64,000 bases of DNA, taken from NCBI GenBank assembly GCA_020891255.1, contig BQFW01000004.1:1612001-1676000 (forward strand), in the 5' to 3' direction. Positions 37,565-38,241 of the stretch are shown here, one piece after another. The notes beneath the pieces are model-generated. The model was not told the origin of the DNA. It saw nothing but the letters and a program-made list of their open reading frames with translations, and did not search any database. Each line of letters starts with the position of its first letter. The first letter of the stretch is position 1. The position numbers and the translations under genes were made by a program. This DNA is from Entomortierella parvispora E1425 (lineage: Eukaryota; Fungi; Mortierellomycota).

Positions 37565-38241
37565 ATGCAGTTCTTCGTGAAGTCCCTTACCGGCAAGACC
37601 TTGACCGTCAACGTCCAGGCTGGCGACAGCATTAGCAATGTCAAGTCCATGATCCAGGAGCGCGAGGGTATGTCACAGGAAGAATTCAAAATCAGATTTT
37701 CAATCTTCAGAATGCCTGCCGTTACTATGATCCTGAATTGTCCTTTCTTTGAGGGCAACAAGGGTCATGGAGTCGGGAGAGCAATTGAGGCATGATACAG
37801 GACTTGTGTATACCCTGAAGTCAACAGGAAGCTAAAGGACTGTATTTTTTTTTTTTTTTTTTTTTTGCCCTTCCAGGTGTTGCCGCCGCTGCCCAGCGTC
37901 TCTCCTTCAACGGAAAGACTCTTTCCTCGGACACCCTTCTCGCCACCATCCCCGCCATGGCCACTTTGGACATGAACGTCGACCTTTTGGGAGGAGGCAA
38001 GAAGCGCAAGAAGAAGACCTACACCACCCCCAAGAAGATCAAGCACAAGAAGAGAAAGGTCAAGTTGGCTGTTCTCAAGTTCTACCAGGTCGATGGTAAC
38101 GGCAAGATCACCCGTCTCCGTCGTGAGTGCCCCTCCGAGACCTGCGGTGCTGGTGTCTTCATGGCCTGGCACCACGACCGTCAGTACTGCGGTCGCTGCG
38201 GTCTGACCTACGTCTTCAAGAAGGAGGGCGAGACTGCTTAA
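37565..38241 (+). CDS. RPS31: Ubiquitin-like domain-40S ribosomal protein S27a (eS31) fusion, 2 exons
   Basis: Exons 37565-37667 and 37877-38241. eS31 [40 protein letters not shown] follows LLGG. The N-terminal domain is only about half identical to ubiquitin. Confidence 0.95.
37712..37829 (+). ncRNA. Candidate intronic box H/ACA snoRNA
   Basis: Hairpin 1 (TTGTCCT/AGGGCAA, CTATGATCCT/AGGGTCATGG, CCTG/CGGG), H box AGAGCA at 37778-83, hairpin 2 (TTGA/TCAA, ATACA/TGTAT), ACA at 37824-26. It lies inside a ribosomal-protein intron. Confidence 0.5.

Follow-up and report, generated by a model that had tools for sequence, protein, structure and literature searches.

Ubiquitin is a textbook case of extreme sequence conservation, and the genes that fuse it to ribosomal proteins are a main source of ubiquitin in growing yeast cells. 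In the stretch of Entomortierella parvispora DNA analyzed here (64,000 nt, hereafter the window), the eS31 precursor begins with a domain that resembles ubiquitin but departs from it at many of the positions on which ubiquitin function depends. This raises the question of what such a leader is, whether it derives from the ubiquitin of an ordinary fusion gene, and what it may still do for eS31.

The gene occupies two exons, and its parts are as follows.

37565-37667, forward strand: exon 1, which runs from the ATG through codon 34 to the first base of the Gly35 codon and encodes the N-terminal half of the leader; placed from the translation of 37565-37666, the PF00240 match and RNA-library contigs covering 37565-37668
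37668-37876, forward strand: 209-nt intron with GT..AG ends that interrupts the Gly35 codon in phase 1; a long T tract lies toward its 3' end
37877-37995, forward strand: exon 2, part 1, the last two bases of the Gly35 codon, then leader residues 36-74 with the VDLLGG end
37990-37995, forward strand: G73-G74 of the leader
37996-38241, forward strand: exon 2, part 2, eS31/S27a of 81 residues, a lysine-rich N-terminal extension and the S27a domain
38128-38199, forward strand: four-cysteine zinc ribbon of eS31 (C-x4-C ... C-x2-C), placed from the translation and the alignment to solved eS31 chains
38239-38241, forward strand: TAA stop
38270-38275, forward strand: AATAAA, likely polyadenylation signal in the 3' UTR, placed from the sequence

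Translated in frame, exon 1 gives 34 residues and exon 2, from 37879, gives 120; with Gly35 supplied by the split codon (G at 37667 and GT at 37877-37878), the product is a 74-residue ubiquitin-fold leader followed by an 81-residue eS31. The junction reads ..LLGG and then GKKRKKK, placing Gly-Gly directly before the lysine-rich eS31 N terminus. In the Pfam search with exon 2, the eS31 part scores 88.6 bits against PF01599 (Ribosomal_S27a; cut-off, 22.3), solved eS31 chains in the PDB match exon 2 at an E value of about 1e-44, and the frame, the zinc ribbon and the splice sites are all intact. The gene is best taken as the single eS31 (RPS27A/UBI3-type) precursor gene of a Mortierellaceae fungus, and tblastn over the 64 kb returned no other ubiquitin or eS31 gene. 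One RNA-library contig, which has several small differences from the window, reaches 38292.

How far the leader has moved from ubiquitin was measured against residues 1-76 of the Ub-eS31 protein of a chytrid (P0052, Chytriomyces), taken as the canonical reference. Identities amount to 20 in exon 1, one at Gly35 and 14 in exon 2, i.e., 35/74 with a two-residue deletion, in good agreement with the figure of about 36/76 put forward in the preliminary description. The individual changes listed there were each reproduced by the alignment: I44 is replaced by S; K29, K33 and K63 are lost (as K29M, K33R and K63A); K6, K11, K27, K48 and the terminal GG are kept; and the LRLRGG tail has become VDLLGG, so that the basic L71-R72-L73-R74-G75-G76 is replaced by V-D-L-L-G-G. 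With three of them lost, the seven chain-forming lysines of ubiquitin are no longer a complete set. Within the Ile44 hydrophobic patch (L8, I44, H68, V70), only L8 is retained, the others being S44, D68 and N70 in 15/15 Mortierellaceae leaders. The identity of 35/74, together with the loss of the Ile44 patch and of the tail arginines, bears out the view that this is a diverged ubiquitin-like domain and not ubiquitin. Exon 1 alone scores 23.3 bits against PF00240 (ubiquitin family), just under the cut-off, and the whole leader scores 48.7 bits versus 115.5 for canonical ubiquitin. Like the other whole-leader analyses, the 48.7-bit score was obtained through a proxy, residues 1-74 of a partial protein labelled Podila epicladia (P0108) that differs from the window leader at one residue; the exons of the window were handled as two separate coding pieces with the split codon excluded, and the spliced protein itself entered no search.

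The leader is predicted to keep the beta-grasp fold. An AlphaFold2 model built on an alignment of 50 leaders has a mean pLDDT of 83 and the order beta-beta-alpha-beta-beta-beta, and the top Foldseek matches to the model are ubiquitin (TM about 0.9, rmsd about 1 A, about 45% identity). By sequence, too, the solved proteins closest to the leader are all ubiquitin, at 52-57 bits.

A word search with exon 2 returned 2478 relatives, of which the best 120 were inspected. In this set, all named Mortierellaceae proteins (from Podila, Mortierella, Gamsiella, Dissophora, Lobosporangium, Benniella, Lunasporangiospora and Actinomortierella) carry ..DLLGG leaders with 31-38 identities to ubiquitin, all proteins of Mucorales and Umbelopsis carry leaders of the ..AELLGG type with 32-41 identities, and Calcarisporiella has three paralogues with ..ALLGG leaders. 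The survey of eS31 fusions across Mucoromycota suggested in the preliminary description has thus been run and finds the diverged leader in all sampled Mortierellaceae, Mucorales, Umbelopsis and Calcarisporiella; the accompanying search of this particular genome for a canonical paralogue extended over the 64-kb window. Among the best 120 of 2478 matches there was no canonical Ub-eS31 from Mortierellaceae, Mucorales, Umbelopsis or Calcarisporiella, and a canonical paralogue in these groups should have appeared there, because the same 120 include canonical proteins of the more distant Rhizophagus, Dimargaris, chytrids and Wallemia. The diverged state is fixed across the sampled Mortierellomycotina and Mucoromycotina. 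Glomeromycotina form a graded series in which Rhizophagus is canonical and Acaulospora (59 identities), Paraglomus (52-53) and Diversispora (49) are half diverged.

Residue counts over 38 leaders, 15 from Mortierellaceae and 23 from Mucoromycotina (Calcarisporiella, Umbelopsis, Mucorales), separate what is fixed from what drifts. Position 44 is S or T, position 70 is N or S, position 72 is D, E or A, and position 74 is L in 38/38; L73, G75 and G76 are invariant in the same 38 leaders and in the 50-sequence alignment, in which Q2, F4 and T12 are conserved at 90% or more. The lysines kept in the window leader are less steady. K11 is retained in 4/15 Mortierellaceae leaders and nowhere else, being Q or absent in the other 11/15, while K27 has become M in 5/15 and K48 has become Q or M in 3/15; K27 and K48 are present in 23/23 of the Mucoromycotina leaders sampled. 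Among its nearest relatives, the window leader is identical at 72/73 positions to proteins labelled Podila epicladia and clonocystis (dS of 0.17-0.31 versus P. epicladia) and, by a hand count, about 78% identical to that of Entomortierella beljakovae. A word search with the leader alone gave 16 matches and no complete stand-alone or tandem copy among them; the named matches are, by their labels, partial Mortierellaceae gene models, and the others are short fragments without a name, including at least one intron read-through. A metagenome gene call of 85 aa (P0130) begins with exon 1 as in the window and then reads into the intron; it was considered as a stand-alone leader and rejected, as a prokaryote-style gene call on fungal DNA of a close relative.

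The intron offers a view of where the leader came from. A phase-1 intron in the Gly35 codon is common to the window, five other Mortierellaceae loci, Rhizopus delemar and Rhizophagus clarus, and in Calcarisporiella an intron lies at the homologous site, one codon earlier owing to a one-residue deletion. The eS31 leader of R. clarus is canonical ubiquitin (73/76), and the shared gene structure indicates that the window gene is orthologous with canonical Ub-eS31 genes. Because the intron position matches that of the canonical R. clarus gene, the leader is ubiquitin that diverged in place rather than another ubiquitin-like gene swapped in. For the same reason, the intron was rejected as a marker of the diverged clade. 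The orthologues of Podila verticillata (L002, 3001-3468), Lobosporangium transversale (L006, 2001-2468) and Umbelopsis (L011, 1001-1471) have no intron, which suggests that this highly expressed gene has lost it repeatedly.

Whether the diverged state arose once within these fungi is harder to read from the leaders themselves. Mortierellaceae and Mucorales have 10 identical derived residues in common, but these do not prove a single origin, because unrelated diverged lineages share 5-9 with them; the support for a single origin comes from parsimony on the distribution alone. Every diverged lineage sampled has lost both R72 and R74, the latter mostly to L, and the other lineages show R72 to D, E or S, V70 to N and I44 to S at the same ubiquitin positions. 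Trematodes have the tail ..C[DE]LLGG with N70, and S44 in one of two; further tail changes are found in alveolate-like environmental sequences, Toxoplasma (..ELLGA), Neoconidiobolus, Paraglomus and Cryptococcus floricola. Tail changes that block use by E1 and spare cleavage may be a common first step of divergence. Phlyctochytrium arcticum (P0098 and P0104) has both a canonical Ub-eS31 (74/76) and a diverged paralogue with the same tail losses (40/76, tail ..ASLLGG), which looks like duplication followed by divergence, unlike the Mucoromycota case.

A diverged leader could also be the mark of a gene on its way out, and the preliminary description had named an unexpressed duplicate as the finding that would undo its interpretation. 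The RNA evidence speaks against this. In contigs from three independent soil metatranscriptome studies (runs X1, X2 and X12), 37668 joins 37878 directly, the intron is absent and identity to the window is 99-100%, and the contigs therefore trace to spliced mRNA; they represent soil RNA from this species or one very close to it rather than a culture of the sequenced strain, and the splice was read from the contig pieces. GC3 is 0.78-0.88 in both exons versus 0.61-0.66 in three neighboring open reading frames, which fits a highly expressed gene. In Nei-Gojobori comparisons of the window and seven Mortierellaceae orthologues (28 pairs), dN/dS of the leader is 0.06-0.50, typically about 0.17, and that of eS31 is 0-0.25, mostly below 0.1, which makes the leader roughly 4-5 times less constrained than eS31 by this measure; it is under purifying selection all the same. 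An unexpressed or decaying copy whose work is done by a canonical Ub-eS31 elsewhere in the genome is therefore highly improbable: in its favor it can be said that the direct scan of this genome covered 64 kb only, but it has to contend with spliced contigs in three studies, an undamaged frame, zinc ribbon and splice sites, dN/dS well below 1 with strong codon bias, and about 15 Mortierellaceae proteomes and many Mucorales that show only the diverged form.

The reading that we favor, at a probability of roughly 60%, is that the leader is a cleavable cis-chaperone that no longer enters the ubiquitin pool; it draws on the pattern of conservation together with work in yeast and human cells. In yeast, the ubiquitin moiety assists eS31 production in cis and is removed very fast, and uncleavable Ubi3 enters 40S subunits and impairs translation initiation (PMC8122580). 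On this reading, the ubiquitin of the eS31 precursor has diverged in place into a ubiquitin-fold leader that would aid the folding and solubility of the very basic eS31 in cis. It would still be cut off after the invariant L73-x-G75-G76, as may be expected from the damage that a retained leader does to 40S function in yeast. Once released, the leader would no longer react in the ubiquitin system, since its Ile44 patch has become polar (S44, D68, N70) and both tail arginines are gone (D72, L74), and free ubiquitin would be supplied by other ubiquitin genes. What the leader retains is its core, the Phe4 patch (Q2, F4, T12), L73 and the GG. In structures of USP36, L71 and L73 lie in hydrophobic pockets, glutamates contact R72 and R74, and Phe4 anchors both ubiquitin and Fubi (PMC10611586). 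Since the Phe4 patch, L73 and GG are contacts of USP-type proteases, the pattern suggests that protease recognition is what selection preserves, possibly recognition by a protease with relaxed or shifted specificity. The acidic residue 72 argues for such a shift, and to this extent the different protease proposed in the preliminary description holds up; as it should clash with the glutamates of canonical USPs, it also counts against the cis-chaperone reading. Two further observations weigh on the same side, namely, a dN/dS of about 0.17, which is tighter than a mere solubility tag might need, and the presence of K48 and K27 in 23/23 Mucoromycotina leaders, with a free GG end that permits conjugation in principle.

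These observations lead to the other role that had been proposed for the leader at the outset, where a folding-chaperone-only function stood beside a separate modifier with a different protease. Altered recognition by protease and E1 remains plausible, as the Ile44 patch and both tail arginines are lost; the modifier part of the proposal is weakened, because the "kept" lysines K11, K27 and K48 vary among Mortierellaceae orthologues. In its full form, the modifier proposal makes the released leader a fungal counterpart of FUBI, conjugated by its GG end with the help of an E1/E2 that is either specific to it or borrowed, and taken off again by a dedicated protease. Such a role could account for the invariant GG and L73, the purifying selection on the leader and the retention of K48 and K27 throughout the 23 Mucoromycotina leaders, and it has a precedent in FUBI, which is 36% identical to ubiquitin and for which both conjugates and dual-specificity USPs have been reported (PMC10611586). 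Conjugates of a leader without arginine 74 would presumably be missed by standard diGly-remnant proteomics. Yet the clade has no invariant lysine, dN/dS of the leader is roughly 4-5 times that of eS31, its surface residues differ between genera, and no stand-alone or tandem gene copy was found in the search with the leader alone. R42 and R72, which are reportedly contacts of E1, are both lost in Mucorales. On balance, we consider a separate modifier unlikely. A distinctly unlikely alternative is an eS31 that keeps its leader for good, so that mature 40S subunits would carry the leader as an N-terminal domain of this protein. Giardia provides a natural example of an uncleaved ubiquitin-like eS31 without apparent harm (PMC8122580, PMC11354881), and D72 and L74 abolish the arginines that USPs contact (PMC10611586). 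The junction of the uncleaved Giardia protein is, however, altered (PMC8122580), while GG is invariant in 50/50 aligned leaders here; L73 and the Phe4 patch are conserved as well, and in yeast uncleaved Ubi3 causes translation initiation defects (PMC8122580).

A more far-reaching proposal, which we regard as speculative and rather unlikely, joins the role of the leader to its origin. In Mucoromycotina and Mortierellomycotina as a whole, the ubiquitin linked to eS31 would have become a ubiquitin-like protein in its own right (S44/N70/acidic 72/L74), maintained by selection, that needs its own protease or acts as a modifier; trematodes, alveolates, a chytrid, Neoconidiobolus and Paraglomus would each have followed the same tail-first route, with R72 and R74 lost and L73-GG kept; and a tail mutation that bars the E1 pathway but leaves cleavage intact could be the general trigger of escape.

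Against this background, the leader can be placed among known systems. The statement in the preliminary description that eS31-fused ubiquitin is normally near-invariant turned out to be overstated, since diverged UbS27a proteins are on record from Caenorhabditis and from protists such as Giardia and the apicomplexans (PMC10457151). As that paper recounts the earlier work, the Caenorhabditis protein was described by Jones & Candido 1993, Catic & Ploegh 2005 added another twelve species, among them nine protists from six phyla, and the structure of the Giardia protein was solved by Catic et al. 2007; diverged UbS27a occurs in all mammalian Plasmodium species (PMC10457151). Two of these proteins are among the PDB matches to exon 2, namely, 9bh5 chain Af (C. 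elegans "Ubiquitin-like protein 1-eS31") and 5xxu chain f (Toxoplasma). UBL-1-eS31 of Caenorhabditis (ubl-1) likewise has a ubiquitin-like, non-ubiquitin leader at the N terminus of the organism's eS31/S27a precursor, and 9bh5 Af matches the fungal exon 2 at an E value of 7.5e-37; the likeness seen here is one of architecture, and the worm belongs to an independent animal lineage. In the protists (Giardia, Plasmodium, Toxoplasma, Cryptosporidium), S27a-fused ubiquitin has also escaped conservation with its fold kept, and Toxoplasma (5xxu f) has, in its ..LELLGA tail, the same loss of R72 and R74. The lineage described here differs in being fungal (Mucoromycota), and its invariant GG sets it apart from Giardia, whose leader is reported uncleaved with an altered junction.

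The comparison with animal FUBI-eS30 that had been drawn initially is valid as an analogy, although the UbS27a proteins of Caenorhabditis and protists are closer. FUBI-eS30 (FAU, in holozoans) likewise has a 74-residue ubiquitin-like leader with about 36% identity to ubiquitin, a GG end, Phe4 and a small-subunit partner, and removal of FUBI is required for a competent 40S subunit (PMC10611586, PMC8354635). The fusion partners differ, eS30 in one case and eS31/S27a in the other, and the two therefore have separate origins; for FUBI, moreover, the protease is known (USP36, also USP16). With canonical Ub-eS31 (yeast Ubi3, human RPS27A, Rhizophagus clarus P0036, Chytriomyces P0052), the fungal gene has in common its architecture, eS31 sequence, GG junction and intron position, but canonical leaders have 73-76/76 identities, compared with 35/74 here, and retain the Ile44 patch, R72, R74, K29, K33 and K63 that the fungal leader has lost. 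Full-text literature searching, outside which the species list of Catic & Ploegh 2005 lies, found no published description of a diverged eS31 leader in Mucoromycota; the phenomenon is already known in worms and protists, and the Mucoromycota/Mortierellaceae case appears to be undescribed.

Mucorales and Mortierellaceae have apparently lost one source of ubiquitin for good while keeping the fold, the GG and the protease-facing surface, and so present a natural separation of function in which the job of the leader for eS31 can be studied once it has been freed from being ubiquitin. Unlike most protists with the same phenomenon, these fungi can be grown in culture, and Mucor is amenable to genetics. 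A lineage-specific protease, should the leader need one for its removal, would be indispensable to 40S maturation in a group to which the agents of mucormycosis belong. The recurrent loss of R72 and R74 in unrelated lineages, in turn, provides a testable idea of how ubiquitin escapes from conservation.

Several minor observations concern the surroundings of the gene and the public models of its relatives. In Neoconidiobolus thromboides (P0083, 179 aa), 23 residues are inserted between KKRKKK and YTTPKK of eS31, presumably an intron that the public gene model leaves unspliced. In the window, the neighboring open reading frames match chitin synthase (31286-33316, reverse strand, PF03142), weakly a HAD-like hydrolase (38934-40046, forward strand) and sulfate permease (41583-43073, forward strand, PF00916); no functional link of these three to the eS31 gene was seen, and the neighbors of the orthologues vary by genus, so that synteny is not conserved. 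The ribosomal-protein promoter word ATCAGG was absent from the 765 bp searched upstream of the gene. Upstream of the ATG, environmental RNA contigs from runs X2 and X3 carry 72-76 letters that are absent from the window and from every locus fetched, and these letters could represent either a distant first exon, separated from the ATG by a 5'-UTR intron, or strain divergence. In the window, a pyrimidine tract and an AG lie directly 5' of the ATG (37565).
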